DNA of 64,000 nucleotides, from the NCBI RefSeq assembly GCF_001194135.2, contig NC_068986.1, positions 89,304,202-89,368,201 of the forward strand, given 5' to 3'. Source of the DNA: Octopus bimaculoides. Taxonomy: Eukaryota. The translations under genes and the position numbers were made by a program. Positions within the stretch are counted from its first letter, which is position 1. Each line of letters starts with the position of its first letter. The notes under the pieces were generated by a model, which saw nothing but the letters and a program-made list of their open reading frames with translations, did not search any database and was not told where the DNA came from. Positions 2,703 to 53,541 of the stretch are shown in pieces.

Positions 2703-2794
2703 ACGCCTTGTTGTGTTAAAACAATGTGCTGAACTAGAAAAAAACACAGTGTGTGCAGAATTCTTTAAAAAACTAATTGAGAAAAACTGCCCCC
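2703..2794 (+). CDS. Cys-repeat exon A1-1: [30 protein letters not shown]
   Basis: tttcttccag|ACGCC...CCCC|gtaaga; 92 nt; phase 2->1. Confidence 0.9.
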
Positions 2795-7461: not shown

Positions 7462-10400
7462 CACGAAAAGTTAAGCATATTGTTACTAAAAGTCAGCATA
7501 AGAAGAGATCTGAATTTACTCGCATGTCAATTACAGTAGTCGGAGGTTTAAGTTGATGATGGTTTAAAATGCTACACCATGAATGTAAAATGGTGATTAA
7601 AATACAAATGCAATTATTTGATTATGTCTTTATTTCTAATACAATTAATTCGCCACGCTGGCAGAATCGTTAGCACGCCGGGCGAAATGTTTGGCGGTAT
7701 TTCGTCTATCTTTACGTTCTGAGTTCAAATTCAACCGAGGTTGACTTTGCCTTTTATCCTTTCGGGTCTGATAAATTAAATACTAGTTGTGAACTGGGGT
7801 CGATCTAATCGACTGCGCCGCCATCCCAAATATTTCAGGCCTTGTGCCTCTAGTAGAAACGATTTTTTCTGATACAATATTGTGATAATTGTCACTATTT
7901 TTGTATCAATCTAACTGAACTACCACTATCGTTTGCTACGCACAAAATTTTAAAGGCATTTCTATTTCGTTAAACCACGTAATATGTATGGCGAAAAATA
8001 ACACAGATTACGTCCGTATATAGATGCTTGAATTTATTTTGTATTATGTAATATATCATGAGGATGTCAAACGCTTTTAGGATACAATAAAAGGTGTCAA
8101 ATTTGAATGTATTGCAGCGGCCGACAAGTGTATGATTTCTTTCAAAGAAATTTGTCCTGAAGCGGAAAAAAAGTATCCTATACTTATACCAGATACGAAT
8201 TACTGCAGGTACATATATCTTATTATCAATCTTAAAATTTATTATTTTACATGGAATGTTTGAAAGATTGTACATCTAATTACTCACTGGTACAAATTAC
8301 TTCTACTTATTACGTTATTTGCTTGGAATAAACAAGTTTCAATACGAAACAGTAATTGACAGGTGCTAACATCATCGATCTAAAATTGGCGGGTATGGAC
8401 AACGGTATGTAGGGAATCAATATTTAGCCGATAAATAACTTTATGGCTAATTCCAAATATAGGCACCAGTCCACGAATGTGCACTTAAGACAGTGGTTAT
8501 TGAATAATTCACGCCAATCTTTAGAAAACTTAGAGTGATATCAGTCTTTATATCATACTTAAAGCAGACAGACGCATCATAAGCTGCAGTATTTATTTTG
8601 TGATAACATCTCTTATAGACGTACAGCATTAAAATAAAACACATAAATACATCAGTCATAGGTGGAAATTTTCAGAAATTGTAGTGGAATTGTTATATAT
8701 GTTTTTCTGTCACTCGGGATTTTGTCAAGAGCAAGTATTCACTGGCAATCGCATGTTGAGCCCGAATCAGCCGTTACTGGTGTCATCACGAAAAAAAATA
8801 ACTATTCAGAATTTTGTTATTTTTAAGTATAGTAATGACCTCATTCAGTCATGAATGGCTATGAGATTGCACTTAGATTGCACTTCCAAAGCACAAGTCC
8901 AGGTAAGGTTGTTCATGGAAGACCGGCAGTTGCCCATACATACCAGCCTCCCATCTCCACGCCACCGATGCTATCCTAGGGAAAGACAGAGGCCGATACA
9001 GCTTGGCACCAGTGGTGCCACAGATAATTTCTAAAGCTGAGTGAACTGGAGCAATGTGAAATAAAGCGACTTGCTCAAAAATACAATACACAGCCCAGTC
9101 CGGGAATCGAACTCATTACCTCATGACTGTGAGCCTCACATTCTAACCACTGAGCTATATGTCTTCATTAGTCATGTGTATACACTTATGATTAAGTGTA
9201 TTTTTTCTCTAATGTTTCACAAAACAAAAGATCATTTTCCTAACGAAATGTGCTAGTATTGTTAAACCAATAATCCTCATTGCCAGCGGTTCGATATCAA
9301 TTTGCAAATTATAATTCGTCACTTGATTAAAAATTATTTTGCCTATCCCAGAAATAACAAAAACAACTTCAACCCAGTGACAGCTTAATTTCAGAATGTG
9401 AATAAGATGATTAGATACTTAAAGCTGATACACAATTTATGAGCGGTAACGAAGTTTAAATGTAGTACATGGTTAATAGAAAATATTGCCAAGTATATCT
9501 AAAATTTTCATTTTTCTGAAATCAATTTATTTTACCTTTATATTATAGTCGTTTGCGCGTATATGAAGTATGTGCTTATTCGAAAAGCCACTCCTGCAAA
9601 CTGCACTTCAACGAACTCATTCATGCAATATGTGAAGGTACGATTTTTTATTTTGTGTTTTCTTTTTTTTTGTTTTTTTCTGAATGGTCGAAATAGTGCC
9701 GCTTTTAAAATCAAGGTGTAGTTCTTCGCTGAACCTGGTGAGATCTCTTTTGTGCTGTTGCAGATTGATGACATTCAAAAATTTCTCCATCGAATAATTG
9801 AATAAATATATGACGGTAATGACAGTGATGATGAAATCACAGGCAACATCAGTGTCTAACAACAAACTCACTATACCTAATATTAGCAACATCATGACAA
9901 CTGTAGAAAATGAAAGCTAAACACACACAAAGGTACCATAATCGAAAAGCGTAAGACGTACGCTATCCTCTTAGACCCCCAACTTAATTTATATTTCTCT
10001 GTAGCATTGTAAACCTATAAAAAAGATTGTGAAATTTATAAAAGACAGTTGTTGAAAATGAAAATAAGTTGCATTAAATCTAAAAGTATTATTAGAATTA
10101 TCAATAATTTTCAACTACGTAAGACAAAATTTAACCCGGAATATGTATGGTCAGTATTTGAATAATTATCAACATTACTTTTATCTAATTTCAAAATTAC
10201 AACACAACTCCTATCCATTGGATGGCACAAAATCGCATAATTATGTAGATGACACCCATTCCGTCGGTTACCTCCGTATTATGGATTACAGCAGATACTA
10301 TGGATTCGCAGTAGAAGTAAATGCTTTAATTTATGGTATATCATGTAGTATTTTCGCTATATGGTAAGAATATTTTGAGAAATTAAGACGGAATATGTCA

Positions 10401-13400
10401 CATTTGTAGCTCATGAAGAACAACGTGACTGCATGGAAATATACAGAACAACTTGCTTCAAGGCCTTTAACGATTATCCTGAATTGAATCCAGATACAAG
10501 CTACTGCAAGTACATATATTTACTTACTACTATCTCCTACATTATTATATTTATTTGACATTTCAATGGTCAGGAAGTGTGTTTTGCAAGAATGTGGTTA
10601 CGGATCCTGTCTCACTGCGCAGCAATTTTGACGATTACCTCTTATATAGACTCTCGCACCCGACGACTTGTGGCTGGATAAATTTGATTGATGGAAATCT
10701 TGAGTAAAATGTCGTATGTATGTATGTATGTACGTGTGAGTGTGTCTGTGTGTTTGTGTGTGTCATGACGGCGTATCCTGAGATTTTCCTTCAGCACTCG
10801 ATACATTTTAAACTTTTGAGATAATGTAATTGTATATCTTCATCTTCCAGACGCCTCTTCGTATTTCAAAAGTGTGCTGAAGGTGATGATAATAAGCACT
10901 GCATGACTTATTTCGACGCAATCTCTAAAATCCAATGTGGCGGTAAGATCTGAGTTATTTTGCCTGAATATAACGCAATCATTAAACTATTAAATCAAAC
11001 TATGTAACATGATTAATATGTCTGTCAGTAGTCTTGCCTAGTACGACATAACAAACAGGAAACATCACGAATACAAGATAGATATGCTCAGCATAGCTTA
11101 TGAAATCCTTTTCCAAGATAATGTACTCTATTACCCGCAAAACAAAAGTCTGTAGTCATAAGATAAACCATCTAGATTGTCTCTTCTTCACTACATTTCT
11201 GCATGGCACCGTTATACAATAATGAGTTGTTAAAACACCAAATTTAACAGTTATGTAAATACAAATATATTACTCCCAACCCGAAGGTATAATATCAAAA
11301 TTGAAATATTTATAATGCCAAACGCAACAGGAAAAGCAGGAAAACGGGCAGTAATATGATAGACATTTTTGCTTAAATCTTGCTGAAGTAGCCGCATTGT
11401 TTGGCATACATAAAATGGTAATATGTCGTACAGAAATTATCTTTGTCATCGTCAAACTGCATAAGATAGATTACAAATGATATGTATTAAAATCATAGTT
11501 AAATGCTTTAATTTATATTGTATCATATAATTTTTTCTCAATTCGTCAATTATATTATGATGTAAAGAAATAAAATATCAAAATGTGTTGTAAAATCAAA
11601 ATGTATTGCAGAGGAAAATATATGCGTACATGAATTGCAAGTAAAATGCCCGTCAGGTGAAAAATTGTATCCGATTGGTAACCCAGATTTCAATTACTGC
11701 AAGTACATATATTTTCATACTACTCTTACTATTCTTACATCTAATATTTACATGTTTATATATTTCTCACATCGATACTAATATTGACATGGTTGCTTGG
11801 AGTGTGTTACATTCAATAGAAAACAGTTAATTACAAATACTGACTACGTTGAACTGAAAATGCAACAATATCGGCAATATAACTACAATACCTTTTGGCA
11901 GATCAATAAATATTGGGTTGTCCGGAAAGTTCGTGCCGATTTATAGTAGCTTACCTTTCGACTTATTTTAGAACATGGCTGAGTCCTTAAAATAGGATTT
12001 GACTACATCTCTATTTAGAGCACAGTTTAAGCTATCTTTTCGTGGAAGAAGGTTTATGTTCCTATAACCTGTGTTAATTCTGTAACCCTTTAAAATAGAA
12101 GATGAGAAAATTCAATTTCGGCACTTGATGCTTTCTTTTTCCGTAAAAAATGCCTCATAAACAACCAAAGAAATATGCGCAGTTTACAGTGATGTTTCTT
12201 TATCCGAAAGAACTGTGCGGAAGTGGTTCGCAAGGTTCAGAGCTGGAGATTGTAGCCTTATTGATAAAGAGCAATCAAGCAGACCATCCACTAGAGATGA
12301 TGACCAAATCAAGTCATTAATTGAGAATAACCCACATTGCACAACCCGAGAATTGGCAGAAAGCCTCAATATATCAAAATCCGTCGTTCATGAACACCTG
12401 GTAAAGCTTGGGTGCACAAATCGCTGCGATGTTTGGGTACCACATGAGTTGAGTGAGAAGAACCTTTTGGATCGCATTTCCATCAGTGATTCGCTTTATA
12501 AACGGAATGAAAACGCGCCTTTTTTAAAGCAAATTGTGACAAGTGATGAGAAATGGATTATCTACCAAAATGTTCAGAGAAAGCGATCCTGGAGTAAGCG
12601 ACATGAGCCACCCTTAGCCACCCCAAAAGCGGGTCATCACTCTAAAAAACTCTTGCTTTGTGTCTGGTGGGATTGGAAAGGAATTCTGTACTATGAGCTT
12701 CTCCCAAGTAACTAGACAATTAATTCTGAGAAATACTGCATACAACTGGACGAGTTAAAAGCAGCAATTCAAGAGAAACGTCCAGAATTAGCCACAGGAA
12801 GGGTGTTGTTTTCCAACATGATAATGCAAGACCGCACGTTTCTTTGGGAACCAGACAAAAATTGCTGCAGCTCGGCTGGGATGTGTTACCCCACCCACCG
12901 TATTCACCAGATATTGCTCCTTCGGATTTTCACTTATTCAGGTCTCTGCAGAATAGTCTTAATGGTAAAAGTTTCAATTCCTTGGATGACGTAAAAAGAT
13001 ACCTTGATGAATTCTTTGCCATGAAACCACCTCAATTCTGGGAAGAGGATTTTTCAAGTTAAGGGAAAGATGTAGACGCATTGTGCAACAAAATGGCTCA
13101 TATTTGGTTGATTGAAAATATAATAGCATGTATTTATTGACCTTTTTCTCTCCTTTAAAAATCGGCACGAACTTTCCGGACAACCCAATATATAGGTAAT
13201 ATCATGTATGAGTACATTTACACAAATGCGAACTTAGGACAATGGTTCATGAAAGATCGATATCAGTCTTTAACAATATGTTATACTTTAAAAAACCTGC
13301 AGTAATGTCGATCGTCTTGGAAAACATGCTATTTAGAATTGTGTTATTCAGAAGAAAAGTATGATAAATAAATATTTAGTTGTATCTTTTATTCTAATAC

Positions 13401-16367
13401 TTCATATTTAAATTAATTTTGTAAGAATTTTCCATCTGAAATGCGCTAATATCTACTTTTTATTTAGTCTTCAAGGCTCAAATTTAGAAATCAGTTTATA
13501 AAATATGATTCTTCACTTGATGAGTAACCATTTTACCTACCTACGAAATATATAAATTACACACAATGACAATTTGACTTCCGTATGCAAAGCTAAATAT
13601 TGTTATATAATTAAGGCTATTACAGATTATACTCCCCAGTTGTATTTAACCTCAGAGTATCAATAATCGCTAATATTGCCAAATATAATAAAAACTCATT
13701 TTTTCTAAAATAAAAATTCTCAGATTTATTCTCATTTTCCAGACGCATTGCCTACTATAGAACTTGTTCTAACGACATCAGTAAGAGGTGCGAGGATTTC
13801 TTCCAACGAAGTGGTCTTGATAAATGTCCTAGTAAGATTTGTTTAATTAATTAACGCGTATTGGTAGAAACGTTATACTAACAACCTAAATTCGAAACAT
13901 AATACACTTGTCAAGTTCAATTATAATACAGACATTATAATGATATCTTCCACTTCTTATCTAGTTGAAATAACATTCCACCAAAATATAGTTTCCATGT
14001 AAGCCAACTTTTATAAATAACATATCTATTTCCACGACAGACTACATATTACATTACTACATATAACAGACACCTTAGAAGGGTTATTATAATAATTATG
14101 TCTTCCTTTCACATCTAGTTGCAGTACCTCTGTCAAGTGCCGCTCACAAGCTTTCATATAGAAAGAATACACATAATCATTAGTCCACGCAATATAGATT
14201 ACAACTGCTAATGCTTACTAAGACCTGAATTAAGTTATGTAACTTATGTTGTATCATGTAACATTTACTCCATGTATCATGTCTGATACAAACGAAGAAA
14301 ACACTAAATTTGAATATTTGCAGAAATCGACTCGTGTATAGAAGAGGCCAAAGATATTTGTCCCGATGCGGAGAAACTATATCCCAAGCTGCCTCAAGAT
14401 ACGAATTTATGCAAGTACGTGTTTCCTTACTACTCTTACAATTATTACTACATCTAATATTTGCATGCTAATATATTCAATAATATAGTGGAACATTCAA
14501 ATATCTTAGAACAATATTTCTTACATCGGCACAAACCTAGAAATGCTTACTTGAAGTATATTAGATTAAATAGGGAGCAGAAATATGTTAGAACTAACTG
14601 CATCAATTGTAAGAATGATGCATATCGACGACAATATATTGTGAGCCGACTTTTGGAAGATCAATAAGTACGTAGGTAATTCCTAATATAGGCACAAATC
14701 GACACATATGCAGTTAGACTAATGGTTTCTGAAAGATGCGCGTTGGTTTGGATTTTCTAGTATAATGGAATTCTTTAGAAAACCTAAAGTAATGTTTAAT
14801 TGTGATCTAAAAACAGATGACAAACGGAAAAGTTGCGCGAAAAAAGTATCAATTAAAACTTGAAACGTACAGGCCAATAGATATATTAAAAAAAGCTTAA
14901 AATTGTGGAGCTGAAATTGATTTTAACTTCAATTAAATGTAAATGAATTAAACGAATACCCCTTCTTTAGGTTCTGACTCTACCTGTAAGGAACGTATCA
15001 ATATGGAGCAGCCGTTATTTCCTCCAATTAAAAATCATATAAATTGGATTATGGAGAGAACCGAAGCACTCGAATATGAAGAGATTTTGTTCTAATATGC
15101 ATATTTTTCTTCAAAGTATATTTTAATTTTGAAACATCTTTTGTTCGATTGATATTGGAATGCAAATATAAAATCGACCTATTTTATCTCATAATGTATT
15201 TTAAGATTATATCTGTTTAAAGCTCTATTCCATTGATTTATCAAATCGCAGTATATTTTTATAACTTAATGAACGTTTCTCATCATTTGTTATTTTCGTA
15301 GATTATTTGTAACAGGAGATGTAACGATCATATTATATATTAGTAGTAATTTCGTATAAATAAAAACATATTTGTATGAAAATTTGGGTGCCATGCTTCT
15401 CATATATGAATTAATAAGTGTTCTCAATTTTTCTTAGTAAGGTCGTTTTGTTTTGGTTGATAATGCCTCTTTCGTTTCAGATTTATATTGATGCCCTCAT
15501 AGACTATGAAATTTTCAACGCGAAATGTAGAACAAATATCAGCCACCAAAGATTGCATTTGGAGGGCTCCAGGTACATAAATACCTGACATATACTCATA
15601 TGAAAAATTATGACTTCAAATTTCTGTATATTTAAATGTTTTATGTATTGTCACCAATAATATACTTCAAAGGAGTTATCATTTCACAAAATTTGACGCA
15701 CAATGATCAGAGCAGTGTAGGGCAAATTTTCGGTATTACCATTACACACCGGCCCAATCGGGATCAAGTGTTAATACTTATCATCAACAAAACATACCTA
15801 CAATATATCCCTCATCTGATATTTGTAATAGCTTTCCAATTCCTGAATTTTTCTCTCCAATTTCCTGAAATTGAGTCCAAAACGTTTACTCTGAAATGTA
15901 GCACCATGCCTATAGGCCGCGAAATCAAAGTAAAAAGAAATTAAATTAAAAAATAATTACAGACAATGTTCTCGTTCACACCTTTACTAAAACGAAAGTA
16001 ACGAAAAATCCATCATATAAATTATAAGCTACGCTATAAATTACACTGATATACAATTATCTGTTTAAAAAAAAAACAAAGATATAAACTTCCGATATGA
16101 TTCAAATCTTTCCAACTACAGTAAGCTCACAGTTATATATTGAATTACCCTTCACACAGAACTTCAATTTAAATCATAGGAGTCAAACTAAACAAAGAAA
16201 CAAATTATTATATGTATTGTTATTTTCCTTATATTTAAAATTTCATACCCAAGTCTATATTACCAACGAAAAAGGATTTTTGAATTCATTTGAATATCCT
16301 GAATATCACATTTGTTAACTTTGATAAAGATAATATAATTTTGTCTTCTTCCTTTCGNNNNNNNNNN

Positions 16368-21761: not shown

Positions 21762-24700
21762 CCGAGTACTATAAACTGGTACTTAATTTGTCAATCTTAG
21801 TGAGATTTAAGCTCTATACACTAGTAATGGAAAATCTTACCTGGTATATTGTATATTCATGATCGTATTTCTGAAATGCCTTTCCTCTCGCTATTATATC
21901 CCAGACGTCTCATGCTATATATCACGTGTGCTGATGAGAAGAGATACCATTGCCAAGACCACATCGTCAAAATATATCGCGAAAAATGCAGAAGTAAGAT
22001 TGTCTTTATATTATTTTATTCATGCTTCAGCCAACGTAATTTCAAGCTAAAATTTCATACTACAGTAGCCTTGATTTTACTTTGAATAATTTAGTGAACC
22101 AATTATAAATGTTTATTGTTTTACCTTCGTCTCTTAATCCTTTATGCAGTAGTACGGGTGGTTTCGTTATATTTTGTAGACTAGACTTTGAGATGTGCAC
22201 CAGATATCGTTTGTTTTTTTTTTCTATTGCTAAACAATGCAAAAACCAGTAAAAGGTTTGACTAAATAAAAATGTGCCCAAAGTAATCAGGCGCAGGAGT
22301 GGCTGTGTGGTAAGTAGCTTGCTTACCAACTATGGATGCACATTCAGAATAATCAAGCACGCAAAAAAGTTGATGCTCAGAGATTTTGTGTATTGTTTGA
22401 GAGATCAGGCTGTAGCAATAATAGTTTATATTCAGATATTTCTGCGAGAAATAAATTCAGCAATAACCAGACTTGTACTATGTCAGCATAGATTTCAGTG
22501 ATGTCGTTCATAGATTCTTATGACTCACCATAAACAGCATAGAATAGGTTGACACATTATATCCTACTGTTTTACGCTAAGGCACCACCGAGTTTCTATA
22601 TTTAGACACACAGTTCAGTGGATGAAAAATTTCTTATGACCAAGGTGTACGCATATGCTGACGACATTTTAAGGACTAACTGGAAATGAAGACAAATTGA
22701 TAATTTTTGCCAACCATCTACATAGTGCTTGTATGCAGTTTCGAATGGAAATCTGCGCTGGTAAAGAACAACAAAACAGTGCAGCAGTTCGGCCAAAACA
22801 CGGATACAATCATCACTGTTCACGGATAAAAACCTCAAACCGTGTATAATCCGCAGAAATAACGAGTGCACAAACCCAACTCAAGATATATGGAGACAGA
22901 AAAAACATCACTATGTAGAACAAGAACAGCCTTTTAATTGCATTAACAAATTTTATACTACTGGTAAGTGCATATTAAACCACGTTCGAATCTGATACTG
23001 CAAAATAATTCTTATGTGACATTTATGGTCATTATCATTAGTGAGTTTTATGAGTTGTATGTGAATCCCAAAGTTGGTTGGCACCAGGTTTGCGGAATAT
23101 GACGTCATTCATAAATCTTTCTGTTGCACCTCTGTAAATAGGATCAATATCGATAGATGGATATATGAACTCTGAATCTCAGCTACCTACAATGCATCCA
23201 GTAATGTTGAATGTATGGCAGTAGATTCTAACGCAGCATAGGAGCTGCATTGAATGCTTTTGAAGATAACTGGGTACATTGAGATTAGTTAGTATGTGTT
23301 GAATAAATGATATATGATAGTAATGATAGTGGTAATATCACTACAAACAAATTTCAATGAGAATTTAGACCGTTTGTAATAATTGTGGTAGTATATCATA
23401 GTAATGATGATATCAATGTTGCTGCAAACGGATCAAGTTAAGAGTCGAACATCAGGATCAGATTTATTTTTATGATTCTTCTTAAATGCATACATTATAC
23501 GAATGGTGTTAGAATGACTGGCGTTACTGGAAAATAATTTTCGTACGAAGCTACCAAAGTATCACAAGCAATCAGTGACTCTCTCGAAGCTAAGATATTT
23601 CAGAAAGATCATGACGACATATATAAATGGGCTGGAGAAAATCACATGCAATCTAATGCAAGAAAATTACAAGGCCTTTGCTAACAGACAACTTGTTCTA
23701 ACAGTCCACATCAAAAATATTTGGACCAAAAGAAGTGACAATTCCAGAGTCAAACACTGCGTGATTTGGAGATTGATATGTTGCTTCGTTTCATGTACAT
23801 ATCCGCAAGACGGTGACAATGCGCAGGCGAATTACCAGATGGATTCTAAGAACTTTTTGGTCAAGGGAACAAGAAACTATGCTGTTCCTATGGAGGACAA
23901 CCCCTTACTGTCAAATTAATAGCGGAACTTGTGTCATTTCAGCGGTGCTACACCAAGAATATTGCATCACTGAAACAATTGAACTACTTGAAGTGATAGA
24001 AAGAATTACCACTCTACTCTACTCTACTCACTGGAGCAATGATTGGAGAGATATACATTGATATACACACGGAAGATCCTAGAGAGGCTGACAACGAACA
24101 TGGACTCCGTGTGAATTACACTGGTCTGCGAGTAGGACGAAATTGCACTTTCCCAGAAGCACCAACCTTCTAGTGTATGGTAAGAACGAGGTGCTGTAAT
24201 AGCTGGGTTTTTAAAGCTCACAATTATTTGATATCTTGCCGAAATCCCAATGAATGTACATAGAGTGGAGGTAGATGTTATCAAGAAACACCTTCATCTT
24301 CAGCTATAGAAGATCCCAGATGAGACTACATGACGGAATGAACTCAAAAGCTAGTAGCACTACCAAACGCCCCTTTTCCTCAAATGCCCTACACAAGAGA
24401 ATGTCAGTTGAACAGGTGATGATTATGGTGGTTCCCCCAGCATGACTACAGCCTTTGCGGGCGCGATAATGAAAGAATAATAGAATGTGTTGCATATTCT
24501 CTACCATGCCAATTTTGCGTCAGTTACTTTGCACCAGCAGTGTAATTTCGGTTTATATTATGGATGTTTTAATTTCTTCAACTATCTTGTTCTCTATGGT
24601 AAGAATATTTAAGAATTAAGAATCTATGTATGTAATTTGCAGCACCACTGGAAGCAGCTGACTGCCAAGGAGTATACAGTTCAACTTGCTATCCTGGCAT

Positions 24701-27700
24701 AAGAGACTACCCGGTAACATATCCAGATACGAACATCTGCCCGTTCGTATATATGTTTGCTACTCTGTTTCTATTATTACTATATCTTATATTAAAAGTT
24801 TTATTTGTTTACATAAATCAAAAGCCGAGTCAGGTAGTTTTGCATTTAGTTTCACTGCTCAGTACATTTGAAAATGCGCTCGTATATACACAGGAATGTG
24901 TGGTTGTATATATTTGGAAAGCATGTGCTCGTCATTTACTATTTGACAACCGCTGTAGTTTTGTTTACATCCCCGTGACTTAGCGGCTCTTGAAAGAAAG
25001 GCTAACAGAATACCTACCAGATTTAAATGAAGTAATGTGATGCATATTTTAGTATATTACTGATGTCAGACGTAGAGTAATAAACTAAGGCAATACAGCG
25101 ATATCATTGGAATGCGGTATCTCAATAGTATACTGCATCTGCTCGGTACTAAATGTCTTTTTTACTACAGGCACAATGCCTGAAATTTTGGGGAAGTGGG
25201 CTAGCTGATACCATCGAACCCAGTGAGTAACTGATGCTTTATTTTATCAACCACCGAAAAGGTGAGAGGTGAAGTTGACCTCGGAGACATTTGAACTCAG
25301 AACGTAAAGATGGACCAAGTGCTGCTAAGCATTTTGCCCAGCGTGCAATCGACTTTGAATTCAACGCACGTTTAGTAGTTATTAAACTCATTTGTACACA
25401 AATGCAGGGCTAGGCAACAGATTGCCAAGTGATAACTCCTGCTCCTAGCTACGAATAATTTCGTAAATACCAGATGTATGAACGGATAGTTACACATCGC
25501 ACAATATAAATAATGATTATATTGCTAAATATTTTAAACTGGAACATCTTCACTCCGAAAATTCGAAATTGTATGTGAAATTTATGATTGTTTGTTTTTT
25601 GTTTTCTTTTGTTTCTATTTTTAATTTGGAAGTAATGTTTACTGACATATTTTCCTCATCCAGGCGCCTTGTCGTTTTTAAAACATGTGCTGACAAATAC
25701 GCAGACAAACATTGTTTCCAGTCCTTTCAAAACGCCTATAAAGTTTATTGCCCTGGTAAGATCATATTAATAATTTAGAATTGCTGACAGAAACATAGTG
25801 TCTGCGAACAATAATGGACTAGGTTAAAATATGGAAATGAGCAGTATTATAATAAGATTTTTCCTTAATTCTAAATGAGGTATCTCAACGAATTGTCAAA
25901 CACAAAATCACAAACTTTCATGCAGAAAGTATCTTTGTCATAAAAATACGCAACATAGTTTACAATTCATAACACTGATTAAGACTAGACTTGAATAGAT
26001 TAATTTATGTTTTGTGATTAGATATTTCCTTAAATTTACAATTCCTAAGAATTTTAAGTATGACAAAAATAATATATCAAATTTGTATGCTTTCAGAGAA
26101 AGACAGCTGCACAGATTTATTCAAAGTATATTGTCCGGAAGCCGAAGAACAGTATCCCATACGTGAAGATGATATTAATCTTTGCAAGTAGATATACTAT
26201 TATTATTATACATAATATTTGCATGTTAATATATTTACTTATACAGTGGTACTATCAACTATTACTATTTGTTACATTGGTAAGGCAGCGAGCAAGCAGA
26301 ATCGTTACCACGCCGGACAAAAGACTCAGCGGCATTTCGTTCGTCCCTAAATTCTGAGCTCAAATTCAGCGGAGGTCGACTTTGCATTTAATCCTTTCAG
26401 GATTGATCAATTAACTATAACTATCAGTTGCACACTAGAGTTGATATAATCGACTTACCTCTCCCCCCAAAATTGCCGGTCTTGTGCCAAACTTTGAAGC
26501 CAATTGTTGGATTGATGCAGACCTAGAAATGCCTGCTTAGAGTGCACTAGATGCAATAAGAAACAGTAATTTATTAGTGATAACTGCATCAATCTAAGAA
26601 TAAGGTGCGTCGAGGACAATATAACTTGAAAGAACACTTGGAATTTTAATAATTATATAGATAATTCCTACTATAGCACAAGTCCTTAAATATAAAATTA
26701 GGAGTGAATTTTTTTTTAACTATTTGCGTTAGCTTTTAAATATATGCTTTAAAATGCTTTAACAACTCATAATAATATTAGTTCATCTTGAAAAACGTAT
26801 TATTCTTATTGTTTCAAAGTATGATTAGGTATGTTTTACTGTCTTTGTTTTGTTTTGTTTTTTTTTTTGTCTTTTGGGGTTTTTTTTTCTTACAATTAGC
26901 ATTAAAACATAATTTTCAATCAAATTTCCCCTGGAAATTCACATGTTTTAAAAAATCTTACACTTCATTATCAGAGATCCACTGGGTTAGGAATCAGATT
27001 GTAAAATATATGCATATTAGACCCTCTGGTACATAGTTTGTTACCTCTAATGCAATTGAATCACACTACGTCCATGAACAAAAATATTGCCAAATATATT
27101 TGTTTTCATTTTTGTTATTTTATAATTGTTCCCTTTTTGTATACCCCAGTCGCTTGCTTACATATGAAACATGTGCAATTCATAAGAAGCATAACTGCAC
27201 AAATCACTTCTACTTGACGTCTCTCGCTTTGTGTGAAGGTACGATATTTTTAATATAGTTTAAATGGCTGTGCCAACGCTGTAAATTCCAAACAGAAATA
27301 GCATTCGTTAAGTGACGTTTACAATCAATATAAATAAATGTTTGGAAAGAAATATTGGCCTGTAACAGTGTTAGTATGCAACTCTCACTTCTTGATGGAG
27401 TCATAAGAGCGGCTGCATATAGTGTGTGCTAAGTTTTCTGGTCACTACCACTTCTAAATTTACTAAAGCCTGTTTGTTCTTCTTCTGTGATGTTATATTT
27501 CTCAGTTCTTAATTTTTGCAAGTTCATTCTGAGTGCTACCATGCCTGTAAGACTGATGTTACTGACAGTAAAATTATTCAGATATAGTTAGTGTTCCTGC
27601 GTTATAGAATACGATACAAGTAACTGCAATATTAAGGTATCCCAGGTAGATGAATGGAAGAAATACCTTCCATCAGTGACGACCCAACTCATAACCTCAC

Positions 27701-30700
27701 TAATTCCATGACCACTTTTTCTTGTTAAACCTGGGGCTAGTGGATATATAAAAACAGATTTCAGCAGTAGAAAGATTACAAATGCATAAATGGAGTACCG
27801 TAAATTCCCAATATAGCTAGCTTGTTGGGTATACCTTCAGTTTGCTGGCTATATCGTTTTGCAATGTTCCTAATTGAAGCGGCCGGGCATTATCCGTTCG
27901 AAATAGGAAACATTCAATGAGGATTTGGAACAGTGTTTTCAGCCTTTTTAGGAGAGAGATAGACAGCCAGACATACAGACAGAAACACAGAGAGAGAGAT
28001 TTCTTTATTAGCCATGCAGAGCCCAACACAGAGGGATACAATACAATTTAGAATTTTTCTTTTTCAAAATCGATCAAAAGGGATCGAAAAACATTTTGGG
28101 ACGTGTACACTAGGAAATAACAAAAATGTCGTTTTTAACAATTAGAGTTCCCAAAAGGGGGAGTGAATATAACATTGAATAGGTTTATCTGTACAAAGAA
28201 AAACCTACGTAAAAGAGCCACGGTAACCTCGGAAACGAAAACAAAACCATAACATGAAAGCAAAGTATTCCTTCTCTCTTTGTATTATAGGATCATGCTG
28301 AGTGTGTTTCCATCATTCATGCGTACCATCTTTGCCACATTCACCTACATTTTGTTAACATTTTCATTAAAGAAAACCTCCCTCGCTATTCTCACCTTCC
28401 CTTTCAAGTGATGAGAGGTTGGCCAGAGAGGAAAGTGTTTGTCGCTAAACCTTTCAAACGAGTCCTCCATAACATTCTTTTATCATAGTCACCAATACTA
28501 TGAAAACTGCCTTTCCTTCCCGGTTAAAGGAAAGTGGCGAGGCAATATTGACGATAGACTCGGCTGACAACTGATTTCCTCCCACGCGTGACAGCAGCCA
28601 TTCCACATAGTCTCACAGGTCTAAAATGGTTGGACATTGCACGAGTGCAGGCAGAACGGTTTCGTCGCTCTGGCCGCATCTCGGTTTCTTGAAACGTGGT
28701 TGTAGAGCTTATCTTGAATGGCCAATGCTTCCCGATAGTACTTCCAGGCCAGGGAATTCTGGAAATTGTCCATAAGTCCTAAAGTCCTAGCCCGAAAGTG
28801 TTCCTGAAGAGGCGGGTCAAGTATTCCCCGGCGACGCCCAGGGTCTCCCCCAAAACGTCGTTGCACCTCCCCTCCACTAAAACTCTATAGAACTCTTTCG
28901 TGGAATTGAAGTCGCACAAGTGTGATCCCAGCAGAGCTGCTGGAAAGCATGGCGACACTCGCGGTTCCACTTACCCAGCCTCGGTCTCAGTTTGATCCAT
29001 GATTGCAGTTCGGTCAATAAGACGAGCTGCAGGAAGACGCGTCTCACAAAAGGCGACCACACCTGTTCACCGTCGTCTATGAAATGCTGGAGATGTCGCG
29101 CATCATCAACCACAGCATGCCCAGCCCACCATTTAGCGGATGTTGGCAGCAAATAGATCACCTGACCATCGGAAAGCTTCCCTTACACAGAAAGCGGAAG
29201 ACAATGCATTCCAGATTCGTGATTGTAGGATCGGATCAAGGCACGACGGTCAGACGGTTGTAGATAACGGATGCGATGTACGCATTCGCCACCTCAACCC
29301 GAACTTTTAGAGATAGCCTCCTCTCGGCCCACTACCGTGTGAGAGTGGCCACCCTACACGTTATCTCATCCCAGTTCTTCTCCATGTATGTATGTATGTA
29401 TAAGCATCTATATATGTTCTAGTACGCTTTTGAATCTAACATTGTCATATTAAGTATATATTTTGAGTGACTGCTCTGTGAGGGAAAGATTTAAAAACAG
29501 TGTCTGACATGACATGTACTGTATCACGCTATCCTTGAAATTAAATATTAAATAGGGTTTATAAGAGAAATCTGTTCAAGCTTCGGGAACTGAAACTTTT
29601 TACTATTGATTGGTTAATAATTTTTATTTAAAAACATAATTCGAATATTCTTGAAAAGTATTAGGAGAATGATAGCGTTATAAACACCTACATACAAAAT
29701 TCTTTTCCAAACCGATTTTGTATAGAGGCAATACCCTACACAAAGAAAACATAATCAAAAAGAACATGATATGCACCATTCATCCACAACATAATGTTTA
29801 TGTTATATATCTGCATAGCATTGTAAACTAATAAGAGAATATAAATACTCACAGAAGACCTAAAACTATCATTAGAATTACCGACATTTTCAAATACACG
29901 TAACACCAAAATCAAGATAATGTGCAATCTTTTAATAATTATTAATTTTATTTTTATTCTACTGTTAATACTACATTAGCAGCTCAACAATTTTTTGTGC
30001 ACAACATCACAGGGTTTAATAACGTTAATGCCTTTCTCAACCACTATATTGTGGATGACGACAGATAATTTTGAAACATATTTGAATTAGATACTTAGAT
30101 TTATGGTGTATCATGTAATACTTTGTCTTTATGTTATGGCTTAATCCTAAATTATCAAATTTGTAGGATTTGAAGTACGAAGTGACTGCGAAAATAGATA
30201 CTTGCCTCAATGCACTCAAATCTTGAAGCACTACCCATTGAAAAGTCCAGATCCGCACAGCTGCGCGTATGTATTCATATATTTACAACTACTATTACTT
30301 CTACAATTAATACATATTATATTTAAATCAGTGGTTGTAACGTTAAAAAGGTCGCTGATCGGCGACGTGATTTCGGTTATAATTCCATTGCAATCGACTG
30401 ATGTCTTGAATATCTGAAGCCGAAACTTTTCGGAAGACCGTTGTAGCGTATTTTTATGTGCGCGTATGCATGTGTGGTTGTGATTGTATATATATATATA
30501 TGGAAGTGTATGTCTCTTACTACTTGACAGCTACACTAAGTTTGTTTACACTCCGTAATTTAGATGCTCATTAAAACAAAGACTAACAGAATACCTACCT
30601 GCTTTAAATGAGGTAACAGTACTGATATGATCAATGAGCCTACTCAAAGCTAATACCTCAAATATGGATTCGCTCCAATGACTGAAACCAGTAATAGAGT

Positions 30701-31750
30701 AATACAGTGAACAATACAACGACATCGTTAACAACTAAGTCCTATTTCTTCCATTGACACAGAACTAGAAATAATTACCTGGAGCGCAGTATTTCAATAG
30801 GGTACTGTATCCGATTTGTAATGAATATATCGACCTCAAAATGGAGTAAACCAACCACATTCAGAATTCAACACAAGTTTAGCAAAATATTAAATATAGT
30901 TGTATCCGGTGGAAATTCCACAGTTATTTTGAAAATTATGTGTAATTTTCTGAGTCATTAAATCCTTGAGATGATGTAAAACTCCATACAAGTAGTAACA
31001 AAGGTGTAATCTCAAGATACATCTGAATGATTTTATATTCTTTCATCTACTTTCTGAGTTGTCTGTTATTTTTCACTTTGTCTTAAAAAAGTAAACAGTA
31101 TTAACTATTAAGCAAAATCAAAGATATTATCTATAATCTTATTTTGCTTCAACACATTGGTAAAATTCTAACAAATGTTAATAAGACCTTTAAAAAAAAT
31201 TTTAAAAAACCTCAGCAATCTTTAACTTACCAATCTTTAACTAACACTTTTCATTCACTGTTCCCTTCAGCAAATACATTCTTTCTCTCTTATTTTCTCT
31301 ACCCCTTTCTCCGTTTACTTCTTTCTTCTGTGCTAAATATTCTCTTCCATACTCTCTTTCTCTACCTCTCCCTTCAACAATTTAACCACATACCTTAATA
31401 ACAAACCTTTCCTCCTAGGTCTCGCTGCTAACCCCCCCCCCTTTCCCTGTCTCTCTCTCTCCCTTTCCTCAATANNNNNNNNNNNNNNNNNNNNNNNNNN
31501 NNNNNNNNNNNNNNNNNNNNNNNNNNNNNNNNNNNNNNNNNNNNNNNNNNNNNNNNNNNNNNNNNNNNNNNNNNNNNNNNNNNNNNNNNNNNNNNNNNNN
31601 NNNNNNNNNNNNNNNNNNNNNNNNNNNNNNNNNNNNNNNNNNNNNNNNNNNNNNNNNNNNNNNNNNNNNNNNNNNNNNNNNNNNNNNNNNNNNNNNNNNN
31701 NNNNNNNNNNNNNNNNNNNNNNNNNNNNNNNNNNNNNNNNNNNNNNNNNN

Positions 31751-31800
<50 letters not shown>

Positions 31801-33566
31801 CTTTCTTTATTTCTTTCTTTTGTCTAAGGTCTCTTCTTCTTTCTCTCGCTCCACTCCTATCTCTCATTCCACCTCCTTCTCTCACTCTCATTCTACCTCC
31901 ACTATCTATCTTTCTCTCTCTAACTAACATGTGCGGTGCGAACGATAAAACTGGTTTCTACTATATGAACAAGTATACAATTATGGAGCAGGCAATGCAC
32001 TGTTAAGTATAACTCCTGCTTCTGGCTACAAATAATTTTCTTAGTACCGGAAGTATGAATGGATAGTTACAAATTGCAGTAAGGTGAGCTCACAATGTAA
32101 ATAGTGACTACATTGACAGATATTTTAAACTGGTACATACTATTTTCAATACGAAAATTCGAAATATTTTCAAATTTACGGATAATGCTACGTTTCGTTT
32201 TTTAACTTGGAAGTAATTTTTACCAATTTATTTTCCTCATTTAGGCGCCTTGTCCTGTACAAAACGTGTGCTCAGAAACACAAAGACCATCATTGCATGG
32301 AAGCATTTCAAAGAAGATTTGAATCTGATTGCCCTAGTGAGATTATTATATTAATATTCATTTATTAATACGATAAATATATCTTTCAATTTGTTTTATG
32401 ATGTAAAGTTTTAGCAAAATTTTCAAGAACTTTAAGAAGTAAACAAATAAAATATCAAACGTTTAAACCTTTCAGGCAAAGACGACTGCATGGAGATATA
32501 CAAACGTTGTCCGATACCCGTAAGGGATATTCCCTTAGATGAATCAGTTATGAATGAGGAGGACTGCAAGTACATATATATTTTTTTACTCCTCTCACTA
32601 TTATTATTACGTCTAATTACATCTAATATTTGCATGTTTATATAGTAGAATAACTAGTAAAATTTCTTACGTTGTTACAAACCTAGAAATACTTATTGAG
32701 GTGTACTGGGGTCAAAAGGAAACAGTTATCGATCAAAGAATGGTGCATATTCAGGAAAATATCAAATGATCCAGCTTTTAACAAATCCATAAATACGTAT
32801 GTAATTTCAAATAAAATCACACGTCTTGTACTTTTAGGACAATAGTCCTTGAATGGATCGCGTTAGGTTTTAAAATATAATTCAGTGATAATGTTCGAAA
32901 GTAATGGTCGAAAACTGGGAGTAATGTTGGAAAGACGTGTTATTCAATTTTCTTTTTATTTACAAAAAAGATCAGAAATTCTTTGGTTGTGTGGTAAGAG
33001 GATTGCTTCCTAGCCACATGATTCCAGGTTCAGCCCAACTGCGTGACACCTTGGACAAGTGTCTTCTATTAAAGCCGACCAAAGCCTTGTGAGTGATTTG
33101 GTAGACGGGAACTGAAAGAAACCCGTCGTGTATACATATATATATATATAATTGTTCATAGAAAACCATGTAATCGTTACCAATATAGCAAGAGATTTCA
33201 CTGCAAAAGTCTAAATTAGACTCCTTAGGGATCGTTCTTGGTTATATATCCAAAGTTTTAAATTTAAGAGAGAGATTTGACGCTATTATCCATTATTATT
33301 GTAATTTATTCCTATGTCAACATTTCTGTATAAGGCTATATTTGACTATCAAATTTAAGTCAAACATATAAGTTGCCTTACATGTCTTCAGGGAATACAT
33401 TTGGGAACAAACAAAAATCAAACAAAAGTCAAGAATAGGAGATCAATGCCACATTTCTAGGTTTCGCCCATATTTAAAACTTTGGATATATATATATCAA
33501 AAATATTTCAATACAAATGTATTAATTTCCGGTAAATATTGGTGCCTTGTTGTACCACTCTTCTGA

Positions 33567-33622: not shown

Positions 33623-34626
33623 ATGCATGTATGTTTATATATGTGTGTGTATGCATTTGAGTGTCTGTGTTTGTTCCCCCCCAATATCGCTTGACAACCG
33701 ATACTGGTGTGTTTACGTCCCCGTAACTTAGCGGTTCGGCAAAAGAAGATGATAGAATAAGTACTAGGCTTACAAAGAATAAGTCCCGGGATCGATTTGT
33801 TCGACTAAAGGGAGTGCTCCAGCATGGTCGCAGTCAAATACTGAAGCAAGTAACAGAGTATAAAAGTAAAACAGATAATAGTATTAAAACATAATTTCAA
33901 AGAAACATTCCATATGAAATTTGTTTGCATTTTTGTCAAGTTATATCTTCCTTTCCAGAGATCTACTTATTAGAAATTAGTTTGTAAAACATATTTCCTG
34001 TTTCATTAGGAAATATTTTACCAATCCCGGTATAGCTGGCCAAATTAACTCCTGTCCAGATTAAACTTCGGTATTGTTTGGCCTAGGCCAGAGTATATCC
34101 GGTGGATAAACTGTCCTAGGCCAAAACTATACTTGGGGTGTAAAATAACCCAGGCTAGTCTATACCCCTCCAGGCCAAAATATTCCCGTTTAATGTTGTA
34201 GTCAATCTCAAACAATGTCTCGTTAATTAATGCGTATCAAGAGAGTCGTGAACTGTGATTTGATTTTAACAGTAAATTGGTTGAGATTTTTAGTTGTTAG
34301 CAGACGTGACAAATATTTGCTGTCTTTTATGAAAAAATGATCACAAACCCAGGATATTCGACCCGCTTAACTGAATCGGGGATACAAAATCTCAGTGGGT
34401 AATAAATGTATATAGTGCAAGATTTTAAACCTGCTAGATAACAAGATTGAACTACATTACATCGATGATGCAAAATATTGTCAAATATATTCAGGATTTT
34501 CTATTTTGTGCAATGATATTCCCATATTTGTATATTGTAGACGACTAGATAAATATGAAAGATGCTCAACTGAAGACCAAAGATGCAGTAATCTGTTCCA
34601 AACGATGTTTAGTGTCTTATGTTACA
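2703..34626 (+). CDS. Multi-exon gene encoding a tandem six-cysteine repeat protein (17 exons, 1568 nt, ~520 aa, 51 Cys; partial at both ends)
   Basis: Manual reading found 9 A-type and 8 B-type paralogous exons, each bounded by AG and GT. Intron phases are complementary (A 2->1, B 1->2) and no exon has an in-frame stop. Cys spacing is A: C-x6-8-C-x11-C and B: C-x6-7-C-x16-18-C. Confidence 0.9.
2868..3222 (+). mobile_element. 5'-end fragment of a mariner element
   Basis: TIR-like tattaggaaggtgggctgaaaagttc followed by [48 protein letters not shown] (mariner N-terminal HTH). Confidence 0.7.
3258..3632 (+). mobile_element. tRNA-derived SINE
   Basis: tRNA-like head with A box (tggcccagtggtt) and B box (ggtttcgattccc), then a non-tRNA body. 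Confidence 0.75.
5000..5665 (-). mobile_element. Ty3/Gypsy integrase C-terminal fragment
   Basis: Minus strand reads [19 protein letters not shown] and [33 protein letters not shown], typical of Gypsy integrase core and tail. Confidence 0.7.
5700..6940 (+). mobile_element. Degenerate Penelope-like element (GIY-YIG region plus terminal repeat)
   Basis: [18 protein letters not shown] resembles a GIY-YIG motif; the 3' end carries a hammerhead-like relic at 6881-6934. Confidence 0.45.
7651..7865 (+). mobile_element. SINE family with head ggcagaatcgttagcacgccggg (other copies ~25150-25340 minus, 26281-26495, 35216-35260, 49760-50100 minus, 54005-54050, 63400-63560 minus)
   Basis: Dispersed near-identical copies within the window; B-box-like gagttcaaat. 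Confidence 0.75.
8118..8208 (+). CDS. Cys-repeat exon B1-1: (P)[29 protein letters not shown]
   Basis: gtattgcag|CGGCC...TGCAG|gtacat; 91 nt; phase 1->2. Confidence 0.9.
8875..9160 (-). mobile_element. tRNA-derived SINE
   Basis: Minus strand begins atagctcagtggttagaatgtgaggctcacagtcatgaggtaatgagttcgattcccggac (A and B boxes), then a body. Confidence 0.7.
9549..9637 (+). CDS. Cys-repeat exon A2-1: (S)[29 protein letters not shown]
   Basis: tattatag|TCGTT...TGAAG|gtacga; 89 nt; phase 2->1. Confidence 0.88.
10410..10509 (+). CDS. Cys-repeat exon B2-1: (A)[32 protein letters not shown]
   Basis: catttgtag|CTCAT...TGCAA|gtacat; 100 nt; phase 1->2. Confidence 0.9.
10851..10942 (+). CDS. Cys-repeat exon A1-2: (K)[30 protein letters not shown]
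   Basis: catcttccag|ACGCC...GGCG|gtaaga; 92 nt; phase 2->1. Confidence 0.9.
11612..11702 (+). CDS. Cys-repeat exon B1-2: (E)[29 protein letters not shown]
   Basis: gtattgcag|AGGAA...TGCAA|gtacat; 91 nt; phase 1->2. Confidence 0.9.
11913..13188 (+). mobile_element. Full-length (1276 bp) defective mariner (DD34D) transposon
   Basis: Perfect 30-bp TIRs (11913-11942 and 13159-13188) with TA duplication on both sides. Motifs [21 protein letters not shown] and [13 protein letters not shown] are present. The start codon appears mutated to ATA, and there are an in-frame TAG at 12713-12715 and frameshifts. Confidence 0.97.
13743..13831 (+). CDS. Cys-repeat exon A2-2: (K)[29 protein letters not shown]
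   Basis: cattttccag|ACGCA...CCTA|gtaaga; 89 nt; phase 2->1. Confidence 0.9.
14324..14414 (+). CDS. Cys-repeat exon B1-3: (K)[29 protein letters not shown]
   Basis: atttgcag|AAATC...TGCAA|gtacgt; 91 nt; phase 1->2. Confidence 0.9.
16400..17950 (+). mobile_element. Penelope-like retroelement fragment (RT plus GIY-YIG), degenerate
   Basis: [21 protein letters not shown] and WKRYLDDCF (PLE reverse transcriptase); [15 protein letters not shown] (GIY-YIG); followed by a CA-rich tail. Confidence 0.85.
18370..18790 (+). mobile_element. Abundant SINE with internal (AT)/(GT) microsatellite (other copies 22290-22330 head only, 32985-33135 plus 33640-33870, 62547-63182 minus, 63620-63775)
   Basis: Head ggcgcaggagtggttgtgtggtaag...ccgggttcagtc and tail gcagtcaaatgactgaaacaagtaaaagag are repeated across the window. 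Confidence 0.85.
19331..19580 (+). mobile_element. tRNA-headed SINE-like element with (TAA)n spacer and hammerhead-like 3' part (second copy 52417-52680)
   Basis: Head gagcatatggcgtagtggttaag...gagttcgattcc; CTGATGA-stem-GAAAC at 19489-19521; two similar copies in the window. Confidence 0.75.
21905..21993 (+). CDS. Cys-repeat exon A2-3: (K)[29 protein letters not shown]
   Basis: tatcccag|ACGTC...AGAA|gtaaga; 89 nt; phase 2->1. Confidence 0.9.
22620..22900 (+). mobile_element. RTE-like LINE reverse transcriptase fragment
   Basis: YAYADDI followed, after a frameshift, by [28 protein letters not shown]. Confidence 0.55.
23540..24420 (+). mobile_element. CR1/Jockey-like LINE 3' fragment, degenerate
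   Basis: Resembles the LQxDLxxIYKWAxxNxMxFN region ([19 protein letters not shown]) and the downstream YTxKILExL region. Confidence 0.5.
24643..24742 (+). CDS. Cys-repeat exon B2-2: (T)[32 protein letters not shown]
   Basis: aatttgcag|CACCA...TGCCC|gttcgt; 100 nt; phase 1->2; donor is weaker than in paralogs. Confidence 0.85.
25664..25755 (+). CDS. Cys-repeat exon A1-3: (P)[30 protein letters not shown]
   Basis: ctcatccag|GCGCC...CCTG|gtaaga; 92 nt; phase 2->1. Confidence 0.9.
26097..26187 (+). CDS. Cys-repeat exon B1-4: (E)[29 protein letters not shown]
   Basis: gctttcag|AGAAA...TGCAA|gtagat; 91 nt; phase 1->2. Confidence 0.9.
27150..27238 (+). CDS. Cys-repeat exon A2-4: (N)[29 protein letters not shown]
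   Basis: ataccccag|TCGCT...TGAAG|gtacga; 89 nt; phase 2->1. Confidence 0.9.
28000..29390 (-). mobile_element. Tx1/L1-like non-LTR retrotransposon 3' fragment (zf-RVT region)
   Basis: Minus-strand [21 protein letters not shown] region. The homologous fragment at 47390-48000 has ACPRCAQSHETVLHTLVQC. Confidence 0.75.
30167..30266 (+). CDS. Cys-repeat exon B2-3: (G)[32 protein letters not shown]
   Basis: aatttgtag|GATTT...TGCGC|gtatgt; 100 nt; phase 1->2. Confidence 0.88.
32245..32336 (+). CDS. Cys-repeat exon A1-4: (A)[30 protein letters not shown]
   Basis: ctcatttag|GCGCC...CCTA|gtgaga; 92 nt; phase 2->1. Confidence 0.9.
32476..32569 (+). CDS. Cys-repeat exon B1-5: (S)[30 protein letters not shown]
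   Basis: cctttcag|GCAAA...TGCAA|gtacat; 94 nt; phase 1->2; spacing variant C-x6-C-x18-C. Confidence 0.85.
34541..34626 (+). CDS. Cys-repeat exon A2-5: (K)[28 protein letters not shown]
   Basis: tatattgtag|ACGAC...TACA|gtaaga; 86 nt; phase 2->1; last recognisable repeat exon. Confidence 0.87.
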
Positions 34627-53331: not shown

Positions 53332-53541
53332 NNNNNNNNNNNNNNNNNNNNNNNNNNNNNNNNNNNNNNNNNNNNNNNNNNNNNNNNNNNNNNNNNNNNN
53401 NNNNNNNNNNNNNNNNNNNNNNNNNNNNNNNNNNNNNNNNNNNNNNNNNNNNNNNNNNNNNNNNNNNNNNNNNNNNNNNNNNNNNNNNNNNNNNNNNNNN
53501 NNNNNNNNNNNNNNNNNNNNNNNNNNNNNNNNNNNNNNNNN

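Follow-up and report, generated by a model that had tools for sequence, protein, structure and literature searches.

Duplicated exon blocks in an uncharacterized tandem-domain gene of Octopus bimaculoides and the divergence of its cysteine-rich domains

The window studied here is a stretch of 64,000 nt of the Octopus bimaculoides genome (contig NC_068986.1, positions 89,304,202 to 89,368,201, forward strand), and the subject is the gene LOC128248050, which has 24 exons and encodes a protein of 704 aa annotated as "uncharacterized" (P0001). Two of its exons, designated A1-3 and A1-4, are as diverged from each other as the alignable introns in front of them, and their Cys residues are fixed. In a sequence-only reading of the window, this pattern had been likened to venom and immune gene families and ascribed to positive selection on the surfaces between the cysteines. 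The present analysis favours, with a probability of about 0.55, an old duplication within the gene, with a scaffold under strong constraint and surfaces close to neutrality. About one quarter of the domain positions would be under strong purifying selection (ω, the dN/dS ratio of nonsynonymous to synonymous substitution rates, ≈0.08), namely the six Cys, the Arg-Leu that opens the A exon, one aromatic position, Ala, Phe, Tyr-Pro, and Pro-Asp, and the remaining helix-surface positions would evolve at an approximately neutral rate. After the duplication, both copies would have evolved at ω≈1.2, with the single-copy counterpart in the paralogous gene at ω≈0.3. Exons could then be as diverged as introns with Cys fixed because the scaffold is constrained, the other sites are near neutral, and both copies are at ω≈1.2.

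Exon blocks of the gene, its paralog, and the Octopus vulgaris locus

Exons were located in the window by tblastn and exon-type hidden Markov models and mapped one by one to P0001. Their concatenated translation matches P0001 at 98%, and it also matches the 540-aa product of the paralog LOC128248155. Exons of two types, A and B, alternate on the plus strand from 2.7 to 34.6 kb. The A exons are 89 or 92 nt long (≡2 mod 3) and encode the pattern RLxxYxxCAx7-8Cx3Fx7-8C, whereas the B exons of 91, 94, or 100 nt (91 and 100 being ≡1 mod 3) encode xDCx7Cx5YPx3PDxNxC. An A and a B exon together always make a multiple of 3 nt, and exon blocks can therefore duplicate in frame. P0001 consists of a signal sequence and 11 tandem domains, each encoded by a B and an A exon, about 61 residues long (61–64), and containing six Cys. 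The unit is taken as B+A because the protein begins with a B exon and finishes with an A exon. The N-terminus is hydrophobic (MKYAISMCFLTVVMGILHA, with the signal peptide read by eye), the C-terminus ...SVLCYR ends two residues past the last Cys of domain 11 and has no hydrophobic tail, and the protein is presumably secreted.

The exon lengths recur in the order A92-B91-A89-B100, which gives a super-repeat of four exons and two domains (A1-B1-A2-B2), and the array would have grown by tandem duplication of this block. A1-3 and A1-4 are the A1 exons of two tandem block copies, X and Y, which are collinear including several intron patches. The view that they represent paralogous genes was rejected, as they are exons 18 and 22 of the single gene LOC128248050. 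Positions 27450-27942, downstream of the A2 exon of copy X, are 59% identical over 500 nt (E 3e-26) to positions 35766-36219, downstream of the last domain exon of copy Y, and the duplicated segment therefore reached beyond the present coding end. A relic of a B2-like exon was looked for downstream of copy Y, and none was seen.

The paralog LOC128248155 lies in tandem directly upstream on chromosome CM046606.1 and has only one block copy (Z), after which it ends. For its exon map, isoform X2 was placed on the X1 locus. The paralog model (L002 31690-36255) joins two B exons via a non-canonical GC donor, without the expected A exon between them, and two gaps, 32692-32905 and 35114-35344 (L002), sit exactly at its place; the missing A exon is probably hidden in the gaps and not lost. 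Isoform X1 (P0003) is mis-spliced in domain 4.

The locus in O. vulgaris (L003, OX597819.1:103907629-103967769) is gap-free, with about 30 alternating A and B exons at positions 1156-46688 and at least five copies of the A1-B1-A2-B2 block in one uninterrupted array with intact frames. It is grossly under-annotated: the only model for its approximately 30 repeat exons is a 205-aa 'hypothetical predicted protein', which joins exons from different blocks. Each domain is encoded by a phase-compatible exon pair, and the number of tandem duplications of the block differs between the two species. Cross-species distances in domains 3–7 (dN 0.2–0.5, dS 0.3–0.7) are about equal to the distance between the two O. 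bimaculoides genes, which dates the duplications roughly to the time of the species split; overall, the evolution of the protein is very fast. The X/Y duplication is old as well. Its dS of about 0.55 and intron divergence K of about 0.26–0.35 are similar to the distances to the paralog and to O. vulgaris, and neutral sequence has diverged by roughly 30%.

Divergence and selection in copies X and Y

A1-3 and A1-4 are 92 nt each and share the same phase (1 nt, 30 codons, 1 nt), and both are preceded by a pyrimidine tract with AG and followed by GTAAG or GTGAG. The divergence counts of the sequence-only reading were reproduced exactly by script, with 29 differences in 90 coding nt (12, 6, and 11 at codon positions 1, 2, and 3) and 15 in 30 residues; the entire exon has 30 in 92 nt. 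Also reproduced were the two synonymous differences among the 15 shared-residue codons, ACA/ACG for Thr and TGT/TGC for Cys. Taken as a sign of dN>dS, this low number misled, because synonymous change within amino-acid-changing codons had been ignored. Full counting by the Nei-Gojobori method gave 6.7 synonymous differences at 17.0 sites and 22.3 nonsynonymous differences at 73.0 sites, that is, dS 0.56, dN 0.39, and ω 0.71, and ω was 0.76 by LWL85 and 0.46 by maximum likelihood (ML), so that all estimates fall within 0.46–0.76.

Homology of the introns upstream of the two exons is real and far above chance. In blastn, 25427-25774 and 32005-32356 are 68.5% identical over 368 nt (E 3e-38), and a global alignment of the intron pieces picked out in the earlier reading has 178 identical columns among 228 aligned, with 6 gap events. 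In a three-way MAFFT alignment, identity was 72% (202/281) in the upstream intron and 67% (62/92) in the exon. About 270 nt of intron are alignable, with 72–78% identity in the two alignments, and the claim of equal divergence in the exon and in the alignable intron upstream of it therefore stands; properly aligned, the intron is not the less conserved of the two. An exon more diverged than the intron was not supported, as exon and all aligned flanking intron did not differ significantly in the MAFFT alignment (Fisher p 0.47). The downstream introns are essentially unalignable (42%, MAFFT). The intron comparisons rest on BLAST and MAFFT alignments; lax-gap global alignments of 200-nt flanks from 17 exon pairs were dropped, since shuffled controls already reached 62–67% "identity". 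The description of the Cys as fixed amid very variable residues was right for the framework and too narrow in extent, as conservation in the A exon extends family-wide to Arg1, Leu2, the aromatic position 5, Ala9, and Phe21.

An assembly gap lies in the 1,978-nt intron before A1-4, between a CT-rich tract and a run of (TA)n. It is upstream of the exon by 495 nt and of the start of the alignable intron by 220 nt. This gap of estimated length, one of nine microsatellite-flanked gaps in the window, could suggest that the duplication and divergence are an assembly artefact. Such an origin is close to impossible: with differences at 33% of positions and unlike indels, the two copies are no collapsed or duplicated read pile, the reading frame is uninterrupted over the gap junction, and an identical block structure is found in the gap-free O. 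vulgaris assembly. Extra exons were sought in the five equivalent B2-to-A1 introns (0.6–3.3 kb) of the O. vulgaris locus without any match, and the annotated protein is continuous over the junction (...PHSC-A-RLVLYK...); the gap therefore leaves the exon comparison unaffected. Its only effect is to limit the distance to which the upstream intron homology can be traced.

Over the three exon pairs of copies X and Y (88 codons), ω was 0.87–1.14 depending on the method, with a bootstrap confidence interval of 0.53–1.89. At non-Cys codons it was 1.08–1.36 by counting methods and 1.97 by ML (Fisher p 0.51). A ratio clearly below 1 at these sites, which would have spoken against selection for change, was not found, and an excess over 1 is unproven. 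The whole gene compared with its tandem paralog (535 codons) has dN 0.29, dS 0.56, and ω 0.51, below 1 with Fisher p 9e-8, and the unit containing A1-3 has ω 0.4–0.5 in the same comparison. In a branch model, ω was 1.20 for the Y terminal branches, 1.21 for X, 0.30 for Z, and 0.53 for the background; Y differed from the background (p 0.034) and not from 1 (p 0.64). This pattern fits relaxed constraint on both copies after the intragenic duplication, with the single-copy paralog still constrained, and relaxation rather than adaptation would be the main cause of ω≈1.

A ratio near 1 on the Y branches would also be expected if copy Y were a dispensable, decaying tail, made of pseudo-exons or of an over-extended annotation and drifting neutrally. 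In domain 11, which diverges more than any other domain, the YP and PD motifs are lost, and the paralog stops after a single block. This explanation is nevertheless very improbable, because copy Y has kept all aligned Cys codons, the Arg-Leu start, open frames, exon phases, and canonical splice sites with about one third of its nt changed, copy X likewise has ω≈1.2, and O. vulgaris retains at least five such blocks with intact frames.

Site models were fitted with self-written code (GY94-type, F3x4, neighbor-joining (NJ) tree) with a constant synonymous rate and no gene conversion. For the 19 domains of O. bimaculoides, M0 gave ω 0.57, and M1a placed 19% of sites at ω 0.06 and 81% at ω=1; M2a added 10% of sites at ω 2.0, with a likelihood-ratio test statistic (LRT) of 4.5 and p 0.10. 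With O. vulgaris added (33 domains), M0 gave ω 0.65, the log-likelihoods were -4605.0 for M1a and -4591.4 for M2a, and M2a had 28% of sites at ω 1.88 and 24% at 0.08 (LRT 27.2, nominal p 1e-6). Under M1a, 19–25% of sites in both sets were at ω 0.06–0.08 and the others at ω=1. Refitted on their own trees (33 domains), the exon types had LRTs of 13.7 (B) and 14.5 (A). The statistics were calibrated by a parametric bootstrap of few replicates, in which data were simulated under the fitted M1a, the NJ tree was re-inferred, and the test was repeated. Two of 16 null replicates for the A half (13.6 and 15.0) lay above the observed LRT of 11.85, and for the joint set one of 42 valid replicates (31.05) lay above the observed 23.98 and five above 11. 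For alignments as short and saturated as these, the chi-square approximation is therefore badly off, and the chi-square p-values of the M1a/M2a tests were discarded. After calibration, the joint set has a p of about 0.05, and significance is not reached for the A exons taken alone.

Diversifying selection on exposed inter-Cys positions, as in venom or immune recognition families, would make the excess divergence adaptive; it is possible, and it was judged the less probable explanation. Several results speak for it and weigh against near-neutral surfaces. The 33-domain models favour a class at ω≈1.9 (LRT 24–27), each exon type alike, the joint statistic tops 41 of 42 null simulations, and at a divergence this high pairwise ω underestimates ω at fast sites. 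Some positive selection may thus be real and 'near-neutral' an understatement. The X and Y branches are at ω≈1.2, single units reach about 1.1–1.5 (aa 1–55, the B half of domain 7 at aa 366–425, and D6 across species), radical charge changes from A1-3 to A1-4 are numerous (N→R, A→R, K→E, Y→D), and block copy number varies between the species. On the other side, ω of the exon pair and of the whole gene against its paralog is below 1, the X and Y branches are indistinguishable from 1, M2a is nominally preferred only after addition of O. vulgaris, and the null distribution of the LRT is heavy-tailed. The trees are also NJ trees built on 84–168 nt, with lengths of 20–32 substitutions per codon, and the two domain halves carry different histories at block boundaries, under the assumption of a constant synonymous rate. 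Positive selection on the inter-Cys surfaces, as proposed in the sequence-only reading, is therefore weakly suggested but unproven, and relaxed constraint on a conserved scaffold is preferred.

The exons and other features of the window are listed in Table 1.

Table 1. Exons of LOC128248050, homologous intron segments, and the assembly gap before A1-4 (positions in the window)
Feature	Position	Strand	Remark
A exon, domain 3	2703..2794	+	
B exon, domain 4	8118..8208	+	
A exon, domain 4	9549..9637	+	
B exon, domain 5	10410..10509	+	
A exon, domain 5	10851..10942	+	
B exon, domain 6	11612..11702	+	
A exon, domain 6	13743..13831	+	
B exon, domain 7	14324..14414	+	
A exon, domain 7	21905..21993	+	
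B exon (B2), first half of domain 8	24643..24742	+	modelled with weak donor GTTCGT
Upstream intron segment, copy X	25394..25663	+	alignable with copy Y and with copy Z of the paralog
Exon A1-3	25664..25755	+	exon 18, A (second) half of domain 8, block copy X, 30-residue peptide
B exon (B1), first half of domain 9	26097..26187	+	copy X
A exon (A2), second half of domain 9	27150..27238	+	copy X
B exon (B2), first half of domain 10	30167..30266	+	
Assembly gap, 276 N	31475..31750		non-coding, in the intron between the preceding B2 exon and A1-4
Upstream intron segment, copy Y	31973..32244	+	homologous to 25394-25663
Exon A1-4	32245..32336	+	exon 22, A half of domain 10, block copy Y, 30-residue peptide
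B exon (B1), first half of domain 11	32476..32569	+	copy Y, 94 nt, YP/PD motifs degraded
A exon (A2), second half of domain 11	34541..34626	+	copy Y, last domain exon

The weak annotated donor at position 24743 yields ...NIC-P-RLVVF; other units have CAA|GTA and Lys at this place. Eight further N gaps are present in the window, at 4387-4684, 7113-7425, 16358-16367, 46042-46082, 53332-53541, 56203-56287, 61230-61780, and 62691-62983, and the first two are inside the 5.3-kb intron between the exons at 2703 and 8118. Where their flanks are visible in translations of open reading frames (ORFs), (TA)n or (CA)n-type microsatellites adjoin the gaps, which suggests that repeats caused the breaks in the assembly. 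The intron between the B and A exons of domain 6 holds the relic of a transposase of the mariner/Mos1 type at 12161-12991 (+). Its Pfam matches are Transposase_1 (E 1.4e-15) and HTH_48 (E 8e-10), and a stop at 12713-12715 interrupts it in frame. Downstream of the gene there are long ORFs at 48485-49640 and 51183-51476 (+) and at 54634-54948 (-) without any Pfam match. Two of them share the ending type '...VIPVVIGALGSI...LQK[AS]xL', and these ORFs may be fragments of an uncharacterised retroelement.

Domain fold and the Octopus family

In an alignment of the 19 domains of both O. bimaculoides genes, the seven invariant columns are the six Cys and one Arg, and L, Y/F, A, F, YP, and PD are also conserved. 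The six Cys would form three disulfides. An AlphaFold2 model of domain 8, with this alignment as input, had a predicted local distance difference test score (pLDDT) of 89.9 and a predicted template modelling score (pTM) of 0.75, with helices at 2-14/16-21, 31-44, and 48-61, and the domain is confidently predicted to be a three-helix bundle. Processing of the protein as a polyprotein precursor, with C-K-R-L or C-R-R-L as dibasic convertase sites, was rejected, as the fold itself contains the K-R, between Cys3 and Cys4. This motif has an Arg that is at least 90% conserved in the family, single-domain relatives included, and the motif aligns with C-K-A-L of the repulsive guidance molecules (RGMs), whose N-terminal domain is their ligand-binding head.

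A peptide of two units had no match in Pfam or among PDB sequences, and when 1.84 billion representative proteins were searched exhaustively with a profile, 27 hits were obtained. The source was looked up for 12 of the 27 family members, and all 12 were from Octopus (O. bimaculoides, O. vulgaris, and O. sinensis), named uncharacterized or hypothetical; the family is confined to Octopus in the databases searched. Many relatives have a single domain, a signal peptide, and a C-terminal hydrophobic tail, and from these sequence features they look to be anchored by glycosylphosphatidylinositol (GPI). At least five members are located on one other chromosome record of O. bimaculoides (55.6-Mb): P0007, P0013, P0014, P0021, and P0037, with the loci LOC128249887 (six isoforms), LOC128249787, LOC128249883, LOC106875519, and LOC106870881. 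P0007 has three domains and the others one, several with GPI-like hydrophobic tails, which suggests a second cluster of the family on this record. In limited searches, no literature description of this Octopus family was found.

The octopus domain is probably a divergent RGM_N-like module. A four-domain relative from O. vulgaris (P0004), linked to the domain profile of P0001 and P0002 (a second protein of the family) at E 3e-38, scored 37.9 bits on Pfam RGM_N (PF06535), for which the gathering threshold is 24.2 (E 2e-9). RGM_N was matched by 24 of 52 family domains at E<=1 (best 2e-4), whereas every other Pfam family was matched by at most one. A precomputed PF06535 match also exists for P0005, unmarked in one record listing and flagged 'faint' in another. 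When both domain profiles were compared with PDB sequences, the N-terminal domains of RGMB and RGMC ranked at the top and were the sole hits with E <1 (E 0.035–0.5); the match spans only 24–26 residues, with PDxxYCKRLxxYxxCAxxxxxxC aligned to FDSEFCKALRAYAGCTQRTSKAC. The RGM N-terminal domain is a three-helix bundle stabilised by three disulfides (PMC7354924), and the AlphaFold2 model agrees with it in gross architecture, with all six Cys invariant.

Other results count against this assignment. P0001 had no match to Pfam RGM_N at E<=10, and P0002 had one at E 0.83 only. Foldseek, run with the AlphaFold2 model against the PDB, retrieved no RGM entry (best E 4.4, a designed helical protein), a weak negative, as small helical bundles are hard for this program. 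The homology is therefore transitive and remote. RGM proteins have a C-terminal RGM domain that binds neogenin (PMC7354924), and no RGM C-terminal domain family was among the Pfam matches of P0001 or P0002. P0001 is not an RGM, as it has neither such a match nor an anchor signal. By analogy only, with the BMP/GDF binding of the RGM N-terminal domain and with the GPI-anchored look of many single-domain relatives, P0001 would most plausibly function as a multivalent extracellular molecule for ligand binding or recognition.

Comparison with known systems

The RGM_N-like fold assignment for an Octopus-only family, the 11-domain tandem architecture with its block-wise, species-specific expansion, and the gross under-annotation of the O. 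vulgaris locus appear to be new. Octopus-only genes so far called "uncharacterized" thereby gain a fold and a distant link to the RGM N-terminal module, which binds BMP/GDF ligands, and their phase-compatible exon pairs show how a two-domain block multiplies in frame. For method, the bootstrap shows that chi-square p-values of M1a/M2a tests can err by orders of magnitude on short, saturated repeat alignments. If diversifying selection is true, the family is a candidate for a rapidly evolving recognition system in cephalopods; if it is false, the domain is an ordinary disulfide scaffold tolerating almost any surface residue. In a wider and rather unlikely scenario, an RGM_N-like module would have expanded in octopuses into GPI-anchored single-domain proteins and secreted arrays of variable copy number with 9 to more than 15 domains, with exposed helix faces under diversifying selection, forming an undescribed extracellular recognition system (immune-like, reproductive, chemosensory, or growth-factor-trapping) and not a repeat protein in passive drift.

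The octopus domains and the RGM N-terminal domain (PF06535; RGMA, RGMB, and RGMC; PDB 4UHZ, 4UI0, 4BQ6, and 7NDG) are both small, with three α-helices and six Cys, and have the core motif (F/Y)-C-K-x-L-x-x-Y-x-x-C-x(7)-C in common. Single-domain octopus relatives, with a signal peptide and a hydrophobic tail, also resemble the RGMs, which are described as GPI-anchored (PMC8902710). P0001 differs by eleven tandem copies instead of one, by the lack of a C-terminal anchor signal, and by occurrence in Octopus only.

The conotoxin or venom analogy drawn in the sequence-only reading fails on anatomy and is unsupported. Conotoxin-type families share the fixed Cys framework, the highly variable inter-Cys residues, and exons as diverged as their flanking introns. 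They comprise many small genes, whereas the octopus repeats are intragenic in one 704-aa, 24-exon gene and one tandem paralog. Conotoxins have a conserved signal/pro region along with a mature peptide that is hypervariable, but aa 1–55 of the octopus protein, including the signal peptide, are not preferentially conserved (ω 1.17 against the paralog), and its dN/dS is not demonstrably >1.

The GDNF/GAS1 domain, a module that is likewise all-helical and rich in disulfides, belongs to GPI-anchored co-receptors of TGF-β-superfamily ligands, and UniProt names one family member (P0009, A0A0L8GPX5) a 'GDNF/GAS1 domain-containing protein'. This GFRα-type domain is larger than that of octopus and has up to 10 Cys, and no match to the Pfam GDNF domain was found in 10 proteins or 52 domains scanned.

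In progranulin, each module is split over two exons, so that exon blocks duplicate in frame. The octopus protein has another fold and Cys pattern and no sequence relationship to it, and its dibasic sites are inside the domain and not in linkers. Both are built of tandem Cys-rich modules in a secreted chain, which are small granulin modules in progranulin (PMC4527844). Secreted cysteine-rich repeat proteins (SCREPs), a term introduced in connection with venom peptide toxins (PMC6262176), likewise begin with a signal peptide, after which come disulfide-rich domains in tandem that fold independently, with multivalency as the rationale proposed there. P0001, with a signal peptide and 11 domains, has the SCREP architecture of at least two tandem disulfide-rich domains; it differs in that these are RGM_N-like helical domains and a venom link is unsupported. 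Disulfide-rich domains commonly combine a fixed Cys framework with free surfaces.

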